DNA from: Octopus bimaculoides
Taxonomy: Eukaryota
DNA: 64,000 bases
NCBI RefSeq assembly: GCF_001194135.2
Contig: NC_068993.1
Span: 53,532,017-53,596,016 of the forward strand
Direction of reading: 5' to 3'
Position numbers and translations under genes: made by a program. This document shows, one piece after another, positions 14,375 to 63,723 of this stretch; position 1 is the stretch's first letter; every line of letters starts with the position of its first letter. The notes under the pieces were generated by a model, which ran no database searches, was not told the origin of the DNA, and saw only the letters and a program-made list of their open reading frames with translations.

Positions 14375-14431
14375 ATGAGGGAGATTGTTCATATGCAAGC
14401 TGGACAGTGCGGGAACCAAATTGGTGCCAAG
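14375..14431 (+). CDS. TUBB: beta-tubulin exon 1 (codons 1-19)
   Basis: [19 protein letters not shown] then AAG|gtaaat; MREI N-terminus; intron after codon 19 is a conserved beta-tubulin position. Confidence 0.98.
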
Positions 14432-14625
14432 GTAAATATTCATAGTTTCGTTTCTCTAGGTTAACGGTTTGTTACTTAGACTGGTTCTCTGAAGTCTTAT
14501 ACAACTCGGTATTATTAAATACTATTTTGTAACTCAGGTGCAAGGCCTACAGTTTTGAAAGGAGATGATTTGATCAATACTATTGATTCCTGTACTTGAC
14601 TAGTGCTTTATTTCATTGTTCTCCT

Positions 14626-31996: not shown

Positions 31997-32155
<159 letters not shown>

Positions 32156-32635: not shown

Positions 32636-33829
32636 ATCTCTAGATAGATAGTCTGGTACTTGTACTTGTTTTCAAGTAATAAATGAACTGAGGTAAAACG
32701 GAATGGAGTGATCTGACGAGAAACTCAGCGAATTGCTTGTCGTGGATTTTAGCTCCTGACTTCCGAACAACTGGTTCTATTCATAACTATTGATGACTAT
32801 TTGTGAGATAAAATGTAAAGTGTTCTTCAAACCTAGTAATTGTAAGAGCTTAGTATTGGCTTTTGTTCATTTAAACCGATAGAGATTACCTCCCCTGCAA
32901 GATAATATCATTAGCTAGGTCTCAGGAAGGGAGCTGGCAAAATTTTAAAATTATCAATTAAATCCTGTATCAGATATTTCCACTGTTATATTGCTTGCAG
33001 TTCACATGGCGTTGAAGCCATTCTGTCACAGACAATAACTTGAACTCCTATGGATAACCTTAATTCCTGCTATGTTTACTCCTATAAATTCTCAGTGAGA
33101 ATTAATCCACGAGAGTCTGGACCTTTTGCGCAATAATAACCAATCAGAAATGAGTACAAATTCCAAATCATAACAGGGACGGACAAAATTCAGAAAGATT
33201 GATCGTTGAAGTATTAATTGCTGGTGGGGACACTGTATTTCGTTTAGCCACCATAATATACACCCAACTCTATTAAAGGTTATCCTACCGTGTTAGCAGT
33301 GCGATTCAATTACTTCTAAGTTATCTCTAGAGATATTCTAAAGAATATGGAGCCAGCACTGAAAGTTACTGAATGCATAACTCCTGAAATATGCATATAC
33401 TCTTATTTTTCTCTCTTCGATCGCATTGTTTACATAGACGTATTCGTATATGACACGTCGTAACTTTCAGAGCTGGCTCTAAGTTCTATAGAATATTTGT
33501 AGAGATAATTTAAAAGTGATCGTTGAACAAGAAGAAAGAGAAGTCAATAAAAAAGAGATATAAAGTTGAAATATTTTAGAAAATGTTTACGTCTGCTAAA
33601 CCATTCCTTAAACACCATTGTTTCGATTGCTTTTGCGAAATTTTAATCCAAAATTCCAAGAACGTGCAAGTTAATTTTTAGAATATTAGATATTCTATGT
33701 TGCCAACTGTATTCCTTCACCCAATTAGAACAATATTTACGAAACCAAAATTTTTGTAATCCTGTATTAAATATTCTGTAAAATAAAGTGAAAGTTGTAT
33801 TTAAAATGTCATTTTTTGTTTGTTTTTAG

Positions 33830-33940
33830 GTGGCAAGTATGTACCACGGTCTATATTAATTGATCTTGAACCGGGTACTATGGATTCTGTAAGATCAGGA
33901 CCTTTCGGTCAAATCTTCCGCCCAGATAATTTTGTATTTG
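33830..33940 (+). CDS. TUBB: beta-tubulin exon 3 (codons 56-93)
   Basis: tttttag|GT...TTTG|gtaagt; (G)[36 protein letters not shown](G); 111 nt. Confidence 0.98.
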
Positions 33941-34102
33941 GTAAGTACGCAAAGCCACCTTCAACATCCATCTACCCATCCATCCATCCATCCATCCATC
34001 CATCCATCTACCCATCCATCCATCCATCCATTCATCCATCCATCCTCACACAAACACACACACATACACACACACACACACTTTCGTATTTAATAGTGTG
34101 TA

Positions 34103-40523: not shown

Positions 40524-40766
<243 letters not shown>

Positions 40767-41741: not shown

Positions 41742-43204
41742 ACTGCTGTTGTTGTGGTTGTTGTTGCTGCGTAGTCCCACAAGGTATGTCTGGTAAGAGA
41801 GATATCATGCGGTAATCCAACTAACCCAAAGTATGTCTGATCGGACGTACCTTGTGGTAGTTGACTGAATGTCTTGGTTGATTGTAGGTGGTCTTGTATG
41901 GAAGAATGAATATGTACTCTCTCCACTGTCCAGTTTGTTGTTTTTACTGCCAACTCACCACTAATATAACAGATATATGGTCAAAGTTGTTAAGGAATTG
42001 ACCATCATGTCTTTGTTTGTTTGTTTTTTGCATATCTAGGACTAAATTGTCAAATGTTCCTTCTGTTTTAAGGCGGTATGGTATAGTTTGAGGGAGACTT
42101 GACTGTTTTTCTAGCAGGTCGAAATTTCAAGCCTTGTGCCTATAGTAGAAAGGATAATTAAGAATTAGCGTTCAAATATATTTTGAACGCTTCAGCGAAA
42201 TCGAAAAAGAGTATAATTTTCATGGAACAAACCTTCCTGCTTCTCACCAATGCCCACCATCAGCAAAGAGCCCACCCTAAGGATGTCAGAGATAACGGCG
42301 TATTTATGGAAGAAAGTGTATGTAAAACGAGAAACAAGACTTGTGTTATTTCAGATGGCAGCTAACTGCGAGATGCGGTCTAACACCAGCACCGTTGCTA
42401 CGGAGCGTATATGTTGGGTGAGGGAATAATTAAAGCAACAACGACTAGCCTCTCCCTTACCTGGGTACGAACGCTCTACTATACTGTTAGTGGCTCTGTT
42501 ATGTTGATATATAACTTTGTTTTGTTAAGAGTTTGTAAAAGAAAAGAANNNNNNNNNNNNNNNNNNNNNNNNNNNNNNNNNNNNNNNNNNNNNNNNNNNN
42601 NNNNNNNNNNNNNNNNNNNNNNNNNNNNNNNNNNNNNNNNNNNNNNNNNNNNNNNNNNNNNNNNNNNNNNNNNNNNNNNNNNNNNNNNNNNNNNNNNNNN
42701 NNNNNNNNNNNNNNNNNNNNNNNNNNNNNNNNNNNNNNNNNNNNNNNNNNNNNNNNNNNNNNNNNNNNNNNNNNNNNNNNNNNNNNNNNNNNNNNNNNNN
42801 NNNNNNNNNNNNNNNNNNNNNNNNNNNNNNNNNNNNNNNNNNNNNNNNNNNNNNNNNNNNNNNNNNNNNNNNNNNNNNNNNNNNNNNNNNNNNNNNNNNN
42901 NNNNNNNNNNNNNNNNNNNNNNNNNNNNNNNNNNNNNNNNNNNNNNNNNNNNNNNNNNNNNNNNNNNNNNNNNNNNNNNNNNNNNNNNNNNNNNNNNNNN
43001 NNNNNNNNNNNNNNNNNNNNNNNNNNNNNNNNNNNNNNNNNNNNNNNNNNNNNNNNNNNNNNNNNNNNNNNNNNNNNNNNNNNNNNNNNNNNNNNNNNNN
43101 NNNNNNNNNNNNNNNNNNNNNNNNNNNNNNNNNNNNNNNNNNNNNNNNNNNNNNNNNNNNNNNNTTTAGAGGACTTAGGTTCCGAAACGTTGTTAATATT
43201 TTGA

Positions 43205-54000: not shown

Positions 54001-56078
54001 TACAATGAAGCTAATATTAAAAGCTTCTTTACCTTGTCTACTTCTTTTTGGCCTAGTCCCACTTTATTTCATTCGTCTTTCTCTCCCCTTCTCTCTTATT
54101 TTATTTTATCAATTTTTCTCTTTCTCCCTCTAACTCACGCACACATTTCTTATTTTCATTCATAATAATTTTATATCTCTCTTTCATTTAGAAGGTTCTT
54201 CTCTCTCTCTACTTCCGTCTTTCAGCTGCCCTATCGCATCGATAATTTCCACCGTTCACGCTTTCTTTCTCTATCTCTTGTATCCTCCTCCATCTTTCTT
54301 CTATATCAGCCCCACTTCCTCCTCCATCTGCCATCGTTCTCATTAGTACAACAGTAGTGATGAAGCAGGACAGATTAACACTGACACATAAATATTTACA
54401 TATCATAAAATACCGATCAACTTTGCCTCAAACCTGTCAGATCTGATGAAATACAACCGCTTCCTTTTCCGGTAACTCTCCCCTCTGGGTCCGTTATCTC
54501 TCTCTTAAATGCTGCGTTCAATCACCCATCAGAAAAGATAGGGGCTTATATTGTTGGCGATAGTAATGGTGATTTTGTTGATTGTGATGTTGATAATGGT
54601 AGGAATGCTACTTGTAACAGATGATAGATATGTTGATGATAGTGGTGGTGGTGGTCCCGATGATGGTAATGGTGATGATGTTCACGGTGATGGTGGTGGT
54701 GGTACTGCTGAGAATGATAATGATAGTAATGATGATGATGGCTGTAGTGGTAGCAGTATGGTAGTGATGGTAGCGTGCGGTGTTGATGGACGCAGTGGCT
54801 GATTGGTGGGGTGGTGGTTGTTTTGATGATTGTGGAGGGTGGTAGGATCTTAAGATTCTTGCTGTGTAGTCTCCAAGCCAGCCTTATTAGAGCAAACAAC
54901 ATTTATGACAATTTCAACCCAATGTTTAGGTGCGATGTAAAATTTTATCGGATGAAAGGCAAAAGTTTTGGCATATTAACTTTTAGGCTTTAAAAACAGG
55001 ATCCTCTCCCTTCCGTGTAATACAAAAATTTCGTTTGTCTGACCTTATCAGAGTTACGTCCCTTGCTTATTTTGAGTGAGTTTTTACCTACTGATAGCAA
55101 TGTTAAACTCAGATAATTAACTGGAGCTTTACAACTCACTGTATTATATGTGTGATTATCTCGGATATGTAGAAGGCACCTATGGAGATTTTCCTTCAGC
55201 CATGTTATTGGATCGAAAAGCTTTCTGTTGTTGATATTGCTGTTGAGTAGTCCAAATGAAGTGAAGATTATGCAGGCGCATAATCTCCACTTCGCTGTGG
55301 GGGTTCGAGAGGAGGCAAGTTCCATGGCTGCCTCCTCGGACAACACACATTATAGTTACGACACTGCTGGTGGGGACAGTGAACTGAAGATTGAGCCAAA
55401 GCGTGACCAACGAATAGGTTAGCGTGACTGAGGCCCATCTTAGTTCCCATTGTAATCCCAGTGAATCTATTGATAGATAGCTTTCTCTGGAAATGGAGAA
55501 ACGGTTAAGGATGAGAGATAGAATAATAACATGCCCGGAGTAATTTTCTATGAATACTAGAAAAACGTACACAACATTAGTCATCTATTAATATTGATTT
55601 TTTTCCTCAACACATGATACAGCTTTGCTAACGCAGCGAGTATTAAATGTGCTTGCATTAATTTACGTTGAAAACAAACTTTTATTTCAATGATTAAAAC
55701 AAGTCAGGACAATGAAGATCAGCTCAGTTATTGAAAGCCAACGGTTTTTCAGAAAACAGCTGGAAACATAAGGCTACTAATGAGCGATATAAATATTTAA
55801 TATTTTTTCTGTTTAACCTATGTTAATGTTTTATAGAACTGGGTATGATCCAGTTAGAGATGGATATTCATAGAAACATCGTTTCACATCGATTCATAAA
55901 TTTTGAACCATTTTTACTATTCTTATATTTCTTCTTTTTTATGCGCAGCCCACACACATAGGCAAGCATACACATATAAACCCACGCACGCATACACAGT
56001 GATGAATGTTTATCAAAATAGGTATATGTTTATGTATACGTATGTATGTTGTGTATATGCGTGCGTGAGAGCGTGTAT

Positions 56079-56373: not shown

Positions 56374-56734
56374 TATATNNNNNNNNNNNNNNNNNNNNNN
56401 NNNNNNNNNNNNNNNNNNNNNNNNNNNNNNNNNNNNNNNNNNNNNNNNNNNNNNNNNNNNNNNNNNNNNNNNNNNNNNNNNNNNNNNNNNNNNNNNNNNN
56501 NNNNNNNNNNNNNNNNNNNNNNNNNNNNNNNNNNNNNNNNNTATAATACCACTTTCCCTTAAAGATAAAGAACTGTTTGTTTTCTATCTTAGAATATTGG
56601 AAGAGCATTGTAGGTTGCTTGAAAGATTGTCAAACAAAAGTAACAAATAATGAAGACGGTGGGTCACTAACAATACTAGAAGGGAACGCTGAGTAACGTT
56701 TATATATTTCAGGCACAAAGGTTCAGCATCAGAT

Positions 56735-56804
56735 GTTTACGTAGATTCTGCCATGTTGGATTGCCTATCCATACGGTAATCAACGTGGCAGGATCTACGT
56801 AAAC
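56735..56804 (+). ncRNA. Pre-miRNA-like hairpin (candidate)
   Basis: 30-bp stem with 3 G.U pairs and one bulged G, 9-nt loop; not recognised as a known miRNA. Confidence 0.4.
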
Positions 56805-57496
56805 TTACATTTCTTTAAGCTGTTCATTTCTGATGAGGAACAACAAAAATTGGACAGTGTGGTAAATGTATTACACAAATTAAGAAGTTAACAGATTCGG
56901 TTTTGGATTTAGAAAGGGAAATATGGAGGTGAAGAATATTTAACATTCAAGAAAAGAGGAAAATATGTAGAAGTGTTGCAAAAAGATAAAATAAAAAGTA
57001 CATGTAATTCTTCGTTTGAATGTCAAATGTTGGCTTTGGAACGAGTCTATACAAATTGTTCGTACAATGTTCATTAAGTGTGAAATAGTTCTTTTAGAAT
57101 GAGTATCATATGTGGTAGAAACAGATGTAAATGGAAAGAATAATATCGTAGATTTCTTCACAGGGAAACCTTGAACATGATAGCTGCGAACGGATGACGT
57201 TTTGTGAACTGTCGAAAGATATGTAACCGAAACCGTCCTTAGGTCTCTCGTTATAACGTGACCTTTCAAAATGAAGTTTCATGCGAGGGTTTGCTCGCAG
57301 CAGGCATAGTCAGGACGCAAATGACCTGGACGCCGAATCAAAAAGATAACGCAAAGGTCCAGGATATTTATGATCAGGATGCATTTGACAGGAGCACAAT
57401 TGTCCAGAACTCAATTGACCTTTCACCACCTGCACGCACGCATGTATGTATGTATGTATGTATGTATGTATGTATGTATGTATGTATTATGTGTGT

Positions 57497-57602: not shown

Positions 57603-58151
57603 TTTATGTATGTATGTATGTATGCATTTATGTATGTATGTATTTATGTATGTATGTAATAGACACACAGTGNNNNNNNNNNNNNNNNNNNNNNNNNNNN
57701 NNNNNNNNNNNNNNNNNNNNNNNNNNNNNNNNNNNNNNNNNNNNNNNNNNNNNNNNNNNNNNNNNNNNNNNNNNNNNNNNNNNNNNNNNNNNNNNNNNNN
57801 NNNNNNNNNNNNNNNNNNNNNNNNNNNNNNNNNNNNNNNNNNNNNNNNNNNNNNNNNNNNNNNNNNNNNNNNNNNNNNNNNNNNNNNNNNNNNNNNNNNN
57901 NNNNNNNNNNNNNNNNNNNNNNNNNNNNNNNNNNNNNNNNNNNNNNNNNNNNNNNNNNNNNNNNNNNNNNNNNNNNNNNNNNNNNNNNNNNNNNNNNNNN
58001 NNNNNNNNNNNNNNNNNNNNNNNNNNNNNNNNNNNNNNNNNNNNNNNNNNNNNNNNNNNNNNNNNNNNNNNNNNNNNNNNNNNNNNNNNNNNNNNNNNNN
58101 NNNNNNNNNNNNNNNNNNNNNNNNNNNNCAACAACAACAACAACAACAATA

Positions 58152-58619: not shown

Positions 58620-58890
58620 ATAACTGCACTCTCGCTACACGAGAAAAAGTCATTGCCAAGAAGACTTACTGAAATGATTCATTATTGTTGCCATGTGATG
58701 GCCTTATATGACTTTTAAGACCAGTCAAGCTTTTACACCTTTTATTATATACTGCACAATTGTTCTGGCTGGCAGGAGAAACAGATGCCACCATATGCAC
58801 TCTCTTAACATGTCTTTTTAGACCTCCAACTGAGAGGCACACCCTTCCACATTTTACACATGCTTTGTTGTGAATTTTAAAAGCCACATC
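58620..58890 (-). mobile_element. LINE (RTE-like) 3' end with two C2H2-like zinc fingers
   Basis: CVKCGRVCLSVGGLKRHVKRVH and CAVYNKRCKSLTGLKSHIRPSH, stop, then CTCG-TGTAG-CGAG stem-loop and simple-repeat tail; no splice context. Confidence 0.6.
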
Positions 58891-58915
58891 ACTGTTTATT
58901 AGTTTTATATGATGC

Positions 58916-63435: not shown

Positions 63436-63723
<288 letters not shown>

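Follow-up and report, generated by a model that had tools for sequence, protein, structure and literature searches.

A conserved hairpin in a beta-tubulin intron of Octopus bimaculoides and its possible origin from an inverted repeat pair

In primates, inverted Alu pairs bring opposite copies of one repeat into one intron, where they are transcribed with the host gene and form a near-perfect duplex. A comparable arrangement may underlie the hairpin described here, which occupies positions 56735–56804 of a stretch of 64,000 nucleotides from Octopus bimaculoides (contig NC_068993.1, positions 53,532,017 to 53,596,016 of the forward strand; "the window" below) and is located in the fifth intron of a beta-tubulin gene. 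Unlike in the inverted Alu pairs, the duplex here is of 30 bp + 11 bp instead of about 300 bp, the copies are 9 nt apart, and no editing is seen (one RNA contig).

The microRNA (miRNA) hsa-mir-548, derived from Made1 miniature inverted-repeat transposable elements (MITEs) (PMC1784062), likewise has inverted repeat arms and a near-perfect stem. However, Made1 is itself palindromic and every copy of it folds (PMC1784062), whereas here a single-copy unit would be made of two partial copies. Also in contrast to the Made1 miRNAs, no target-site duplication is present at the octopus locus (the flanks read ...CAGAT / hairpin / TTACA..., without a direct repeat, as a preliminary description of the locus had it), and the hairpin is a candidate known from DNA and from one RNA contig. 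With the hairpins and de novo miRNAs produced by template switching (PMC8794818, PMC10710096), the locus shares a near-perfect inverted repeat, a short spacer, sharp boundaries and unremarkable intron DNA around them; it differs in that one arm has an extra 22-nt segment and in that both arms read as native repeat. Finally, octopus-restricted miRNA families (PMC9699675) resemble it in their conservation among congeners and in the intronic, sense-strand position of the hairpin; unlike them, it has a structure atypical for Microprocessor, and its seeds are absent from the part of the PMC9699675 tables covered here. That catalogue counts 138 miRNA families, 35 of them octopus-restricted, a number its authors call an underestimate, and presence in both octopus species was required for entry (PMC9699675).

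We lean modestly toward reading the hairpin as the old, passively transcribed and drifting junction of two inverted partial copies of one dispersed, moderately abundant repeat. The two segments appear to belong to the same family, lie in opposite orientation and fall within one transcription unit, the properties by which an inverted interspersed-repeat pair is recognized. The locus would then be one more case of inverted repeat pairs seeding long intronic RNA duplexes. Its main use would then be as a caution: a strong, conserved hairpin with wobble pairs that favor one strand is insufficient for calling an miRNA, especially among close species.

Fold, host gene and transcription

The 70 bases at 56735–56804 match exactly those quoted in the preliminary description. 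The + strand RNA forms a stem of 24 bp, then a bulged G56759 and 6 further bp under a 9-nt loop, with a minimum free energy of -45.2 kcal/mol against -13.6 +/- 2.9 for dinucleotide shuffles (z = -10.8); 0/200 shuffles reach that energy. The non-Watson–Crick pairs (U56747.G56792, U56754.G56785 and G56763.U56777) are all G.U on this strand. On the - strand the three become A.C mismatches and the fold weakens to -33.4 kcal/mol. Refolding thus reproduces the 30-bp stem with three G.U pairs, a bulged G and a 9-nt loop that had been described, and also the A.C mismatches expected on the minus strand. When the fold is extended to 56690–56850 (161 nt; -57.9 kcal/mol, z -7.1), a one-sided 3′ bulge of ~22 nt follows the 30-bp stem and is itself followed by an 11-bp outer stem (56721–56733/56830–56841). 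The parts are as follows.

56735–56804, + strand: hairpin, from the fold, in the sense strand of the host intron
56735–56765, + strand: left (5′) arm, single-copy by depth, carrying all stem substitutions (56755, 56756, 56761, 56763)
56766–56774, + strand: apical loop UAUCCAUAC, with the variable sites 56767 and 56769 and without UGU/GUG
56775–56804, + strand: right (3′) arm, inside repeat block B from 56778 onward
56805–56829, + strand: asymmetric 3′ internal loop, a repeat segment that the right copy has and the left copy lacks
56721–56733, + strand: 5′ half of the outer stem, where the inverted repeat continues past the hairpin (extended fold)
56830–56841, + strand: 3′ half of the outer stem (extended fold)

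All N-free 90-nt windows sliding along the stretch were folded on both strands (11,486 folds). Among them the hairpin ranks as the strongest fold outside microsatellites, and the only stronger ones are (TG)n/(TA)n microsatellite palindromes. The whole window is very dense in (TG)n, (TA)n and (TATG)n microsatellites. Intron 5 contains two other strong non-microsatellite hairpins, at 55251–55340 (- strand) and 41771–41860 (+ strand): a 16-bp perfect stem, GAAGTGGAGATTATGC / GCATAATCTTCACTTC, and a stem of ~18 bp with a 50-nt loop, CCACAAGGTATGTCTGGT ... ATCGGACGTACCTTGTGG.

Two assembly gaps lie near the hairpin, at 56379–56541 and 57673–58128. Despite them, the hairpin is not an assembly artefact, since the stretch comes out identical in four independent DNA runs of this organism. 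In the window as a whole there are fifteen runs of N (10–978 nt), making up 8% of it.

The host is a beta-tubulin gene on the + strand, of which six exons were placed by tblastn with a beta-tubulin. The encoded tubulin is 95% identical to molluscan proteins; the matches to it were 90%-identity clusters of other animals, with no cephalopod entry among them.

14375–14434, 32012–32125 and 33829–33945, + strand: exons 1–3 (tblastn)
from 37656, + strand: exon 4 (tblastn)
about 40530–40757, + strand: exon 5, with an approximate 5′ boundary; intron 5 begins after 40757 (tblastn)
63460–63702, + strand: exon 6; intron 5 ends just upstream (tblastn and spliced mRNA contig)

A spliced mRNA contig (run X14, depth 582) covers 63458–63703 and runs on into neighboring exons. 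Together, the tblastn exons and this contig bear out the location in tubulin intron 5 that had been proposed. That intron measures 22.7 kb; in its sense strand, the hairpin lies ~16 kb past the 5′ splice site and 6.6 kb short of the 3′ one. The introns of the gene also include one of 17.6 kb. A mirtron was considered and rejected, the hairpin ends being at those distances from the splice sites.

In the same run, one RNA contig covers the hairpin.

56730–56958, strand not assigned: RNA-covered stretch, a 229-nt contig of run X14, depth 4.7, without differences from the DNA

Its depth is about 1% of that of the host exon (4.7 vs. 582), and it is therefore probably intron RNA, compatible with transcription of the hairpin in the sense orientation. 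The unique core of the hairpin is without reads in the raw poly(A) RNA of runs X24, X28 and X29, in which the host gene is not detectably expressed. The control was exon 6: there, reads of these three runs, which date from 2026, agree with 63619–63650 only, differ by G>C at 63633 and diverge beyond; their source is the mRNA of a paralogous beta-tubulin. Because the host tubulin is silent in these runs, the absence of core reads in them is uninformative.

Repeat copies on both sides of the hairpin

The surroundings had been taken as non-repetitive, and this does not hold: the flanks and the right arm stand at 20–90 times single-copy depth. Copy depth was read from contigs of four DNA runs placed on 56660–56869. 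In this region, single-copy sequence extends up to 56666; a first block (block A, 56667–56733) is present at 40–90 times single copy; 56737–56764 (to about 56771) is again single copy; a second block (block B, 56778–56836), which includes the right arm, is at 20–35 times; and from 56842 the sequence is single. Raised depth is found already from 56600 onward. The left arm and the loop alone are thus unique, and the same depth profile recurs in four other taxa. The two repeat segments can be given as follows.

56600–56733, - strand: left repeat copy (depth), with block A as its core from 56667/56680 to 56733 and lower-identity copies back to ~56600
56778–56836, + strand: right repeat copy, block B (depth), consisting of the right arm and 32 nt downstream

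The copy-number check proposed in the preliminary description gives a divided answer: dispersed copies exist of the flanks and the right arm, and the folding unit itself is single-copy. A MITE is rejected on the same grounds, the left arm and loop being single-copy in the four runs and the repeats being confined to flanks and right arm. In the window, neither a pattern search with 3 mismatches nor word-7 BLAST found a second copy of the hairpin, and a search for the repeat core likewise gave no further copy.

The relation between the two blocks comes from the clipped ends of their other copies. Past 56836, copies of block B have TGGG, followed by 56696–56721 in reverse complement (24–25/26). 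Copies of block A continue past 56733 with ~11 nt and then with the reverse complement of 56797–56815 (17/19). For both matches the shuffle p is 0 in 200. Since the two continuations mirror each other, we infer from these 30-nt clipped-end consensuses that blocks A and B adjoin each other in a single repeat family and lie in opposite orientation in the window. Beyond 56733, the family has ~22 nt that are missing from the left copy of the window and then reads GTTTATGT, which is close to 56735–56742, the start of the left arm (GTTTACGT). Because the family reads GTTTATGT at that point, the simplest reading of the left arm would be that the left copy goes on natively there after losing 22 nt, which would make the arm repeat sequence itself.

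In the scheme that we prefer, the left copy (about 56600–56758) would lie in reverse orientation, with ~22 nt lost, and the right copy (about 56778–56836/41) in forward orientation. Where the two overlap in repeat coordinates, a DNA palindrome would result, and transcription of the intron would yield the 30-bp RNA stem together with the weaker outer stem. The inverted arrangement would predate the split of the five sampled taxa. Later drift would have proceeded by ordinary transitions, with G.U and A.C as roughly equally frequent outcomes on the sense strand. Transcription would be passive, with the host pre-mRNA, and the 30-bp duplex could possibly be touched by enzymes acting on double-stranded RNA (dsRNA) such as ADAR and Dicer.

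How the inverted pair arose is a separate question from what it does. A single in-place event on one repeat copy, by template switching or fold-back replication, is a possible, if somewhat unlikely, alternative to two insertions, and would fit any functional reading. The arms are identical at 22/24 positions and their boundaries are sharp; the residues GGAAC at 56837–56841 are nearer to the reverse complement of the left copy (TGAAC) than to the family consensus (TGGGCC); inverted duplications of the same family exist at other loci (joint 56769->56803, below); and the mechanism is documented (PMC8794818, PMC10710096). However, the right copy has the 22-nt segment that is missing from the left copy, so that an extra deletion would be required. 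The palindrome is moreover found in all five taxa, with no pre-event state seen among them, and the spacer resembles forward-oriented family sequence upstream of block B, as would fit an independent copy.

Some observations concern the family as such. A 19-mer of block A, searched in public contig collections for full copies of the repeat, matched 11 metagenome contigs that share only 19–25 nt; they were rejected as repeat copies, the similarity ending there. The best-conserved 25 nt of block A (56703–56727, TATATTTCAGGCACAAAGGTTCAGC) occur at 96% in four unrelated metagenome contigs, probably by chance after selection with the 19-mer. Upstream of block B, the family normally has a sequence that agrees with 56605–56620 in reverse complement (15/16, shuffle p 0.005), positions that lie beyond block A; a period of ~175 nt, internal or tandem, is possible for the repeat. 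Contigs with a joint 56728->56794 are found in three taxa at ~2 times single-copy depth, with blocks A and B on the same strand and a spacer of only 9–15 nt (CTCAACATAGATACT in organism A). They appear to represent a paralogous locus that shares the layout but not the left arm and loop. With the joint 56769->56803, on opposite strands, a single-copy contig of 996 nt contains an inverted duplication of block B around a different center. Palindromes from this repeat family may therefore be recurrent and the family prone to such rearrangements.

Comparison among five taxa

Conservation in congeners, which had been named as a check, is observed: the same hairpin is present in orthologous contigs of four other taxa. 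These contigs run into unique flanks at 90–97% identity and cross the hairpin without gaps.

organism B, run X15: 56692–56984, 8 differences
organism C, run X16: 56699–56984, 14 differences; run X19: 56545–56838, 21 differences
organism D, run X17: 56544–56871, 30 differences
organism E, run X18: 56626–56790, 7 differences

Differences within the hairpin were called after repeat copies had been filtered out at 93% likeness.

X15: none
X16: 56761 T>C; in the loop, 56767 A>G
X17: 56756 T>C and 56763 G>A; in the loop, 56767 A>G and 56769 C>A
X18: 56756 T>C
X19: 56755 G>A and 56756 T>C; in the loop, 56767 A>G

The right arm is without substitution in the three orthologous contigs that span it. The tables of differences list 3–4 of the 7–9 mismatches per contig, the others lying near the ends of aligned pieces, and invariance of the right arm in run X18, near 56790, is probable.

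Watson–Crick pairs of the sense RNA become A.C or C.A mismatches through the changes at 56755, 56756 and 56761 (they would be G.U on the antisense RNA), while 56763 G>A restores A-U from G.U. The sense-strand folds of the orthologues stay strong (-40.0 to -45.2 kcal/mol). Covariation in other taxa, also named beforehand as a check, is absent, with no compensated change among the six variable sites in the five taxa. Over the clade, the imperfections of the stem on the sense strand amount to three G.U and three A.C, and such an equal split would be expected from neutral transitions in a DNA palindrome. The argument drawn earlier from the imperfections being all G.U on the sense strand thus fails: its probability by chance is P = 0.125 (0.25 for either strand), and the other taxa show A.C. 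In the reference, two of the three G.U pairs are C-to-T changes in the left arm, one of them at CpG. Variable sites in the hairpin (6/70) are comparable in frequency to those of the flanks (at least 8.8–12%). On the reading preferred here, the hairpin would be evolving neutrally.

Several observations weigh against the reading as a passively transcribed, drifting repeat pair. Firstly, in run X14 an RNA contig covers the hairpin, yet none covers the neighboring intron sequence, the rest of 56542–57400 being without RNA contig except for a piece of another repeat copy. Secondly, the family was rebuilt from 30-nt consensus ends with an agreement of 0.55–0.85, and not from full copies. Thirdly, the arms are more alike (22/24) than the outer segments of the repeat (about 11/14), which could result from later homogenisation or from selection. 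Lastly, the variation is unevenly spread. The basal 20 bp (40 nt) do not vary in the five taxa where 3.5–4.8 variable sites would be expected (P(0) 0.03–0.008), and all six variable sites fall within the distal 30 nt (56755–56769; P = 0.006). Counted per taxon, there are 10/336 differences in the hairpin and 69/1030 in the flanks (P 0.01, the taxa not being independent). These tests of constraint were chosen post hoc, on taxa that share branches and are only 3–10% diverged; they give a weak signal that the basal stem may be protected, either by selection on the RNA or by DNA-level exchange of one arm with the other.

Positions 56756 and 56767, 11 nt apart, occur in all four allele combinations across the taxa. 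Both conflict with the tree ((A,B),((X16,X18),(X17,X19))) obtained from about 20 flanking substitutions, which points to recurrent change or conversion at these sites. In a comparison made on 56980–57400, run X16, which has the same species label as X19 and X25, shares ~10 substitutions with X18 (of another label) and not with X19/X25, which makes either the label or the taxonomy inconsistent.

Readings of function

The inverted repeat pair, as we prefer to read it, need have no dedicated function. A hairpin born from such a pair could nevertheless have become a young, lineage-restricted miRNA, or a Dicer-dependent source of endogenous small interfering RNA (endo-siRNA), expressed from the host intron. 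We regard this as unlikely, and as slightly less likely still its specific form, an unannotated miRNA or short hairpin siRNA gene of the octopus group that would be co-expressed with beta-tubulin and use the invariant 3′ arm as guide. The sense-strand hairpin is strong and lies in the intron of a highly expressed gene, and an RNA contig covers it. Variation among the five taxa is found in the distal stem and loop and spares the basal 20 bp and the 3′ arm, as is expected of a precursor. miRNAs derived from repeats and from template switches are known elsewhere (PMC1784062, PMC10710096), and the 35 octopus-restricted families belong to a count called an underestimate (PMC9699675).

The structure speaks against it. 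At least 16 paired bases between arms of ~22 nt and a loop of at least 8 nt are indeed present, and with 30 bp the stem is, if anything, too perfect. Animal primary miRNA transcripts usually have an imperfect stem of ~35 bp between single-stranded basal flanks and an apical loop, and their processing is often helped by a UG at -14, an apical UGU/GUG and a CNNC 16–18 nt downstream. The hairpin falls short of this architecture. Its stem of ~30 bp is near-perfect, with a 9-nt loop, where Microprocessor prefers an imperfect one of ~35 bp; a 22-nt one-sided bulge lies at its base; and in five registers on either strand none of the UG, UGU/GUG and CNNC motifs is present. The A.C mismatches stand without compensation in three taxa, and the derivation of the arms from a dispersed repeat also leans against a canonical miRNA.

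The comparison with published miRNAs adds to the doubt. In the part of the PMC9699675 supplements that was covered, the strings of the arms are absent (the miRNA sequences themselves are held in MirGeneDB). In the same part, 18 strings for candidate seed sites (twelve 7-mers and six 8-mers), which represent plausible 5p and 3p registers on both strands, three 5p registers being taken both as 8-mers and as 7-mers, are absent as miRNA target sites. A search of full-text literature for the arm sequences matched no paper. Being conserved, the hairpin would have qualified under the both-species rule of the catalogue, had it been expressed. If small RNAs do arise from it, the locus would show cleanly how an miRNA is born from repeat DNA, and would do so in the lineage whose miRNA expansion is the largest among invertebrates, with the repeat parentage still visible and the structure present in all five sampled taxa. 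A guide-strand miRNA would in that event be a dated example, within the cephalopod expansion, of miRNA birth from an inverted repeat pair.

Rather improbable, in our view, is a role of the intronic dsRNA as an ADAR substrate that would affect intron processing or dsRNA sensing and would not lead to small RNA. ADARs are promiscuous on duplexes of this kind, and editing is heavy in coleoids; the inverted pair, lying in a transcribed intron, would offer them a near-perfect duplex of 30 bp with an outer stem, which makes the idea structurally plausible. However, the sole RNA contig over the hairpin is without an A-to-G difference (contigs drop rare variants), and the status of substrate by itself implies no function.

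A scan of the whole window at gathering scores gives no hit to any Rfam family. The best permissive match is to mir-51 (RF04193) on the - strand, with 29.1 bits (E 6.6e-4 for a search of 559 nt), and rests on the shape of the hairpin and on CGUAGAUCC, shared with miR-100-type sequences; the 5′ arm of the hairpin begins GUUUACGUAG, which is not a miR-10-type seed (ACCCGUA). An antisense-strand member of the miR-10/miR-100/mir-51 family is already effectively refuted, and mir-51 or MIR-10 membership was rejected, by a score far under the gathering score of 70 and by a seed region UUUACGU or UUACGUA in place of ACCCGUA, in a segment that belongs to a repeat with dozens of copies and on the strand with the weaker, A.C-containing fold.

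One further feature of intron 5 lies outside the hairpin. At 58669–58914, on the - strand, an open frame of 82 codons contains two C2H2 zinc-finger-like motifs (C..C...H...H); it may be a piece of a zinc-finger gene or of a gene carried by a transposon.

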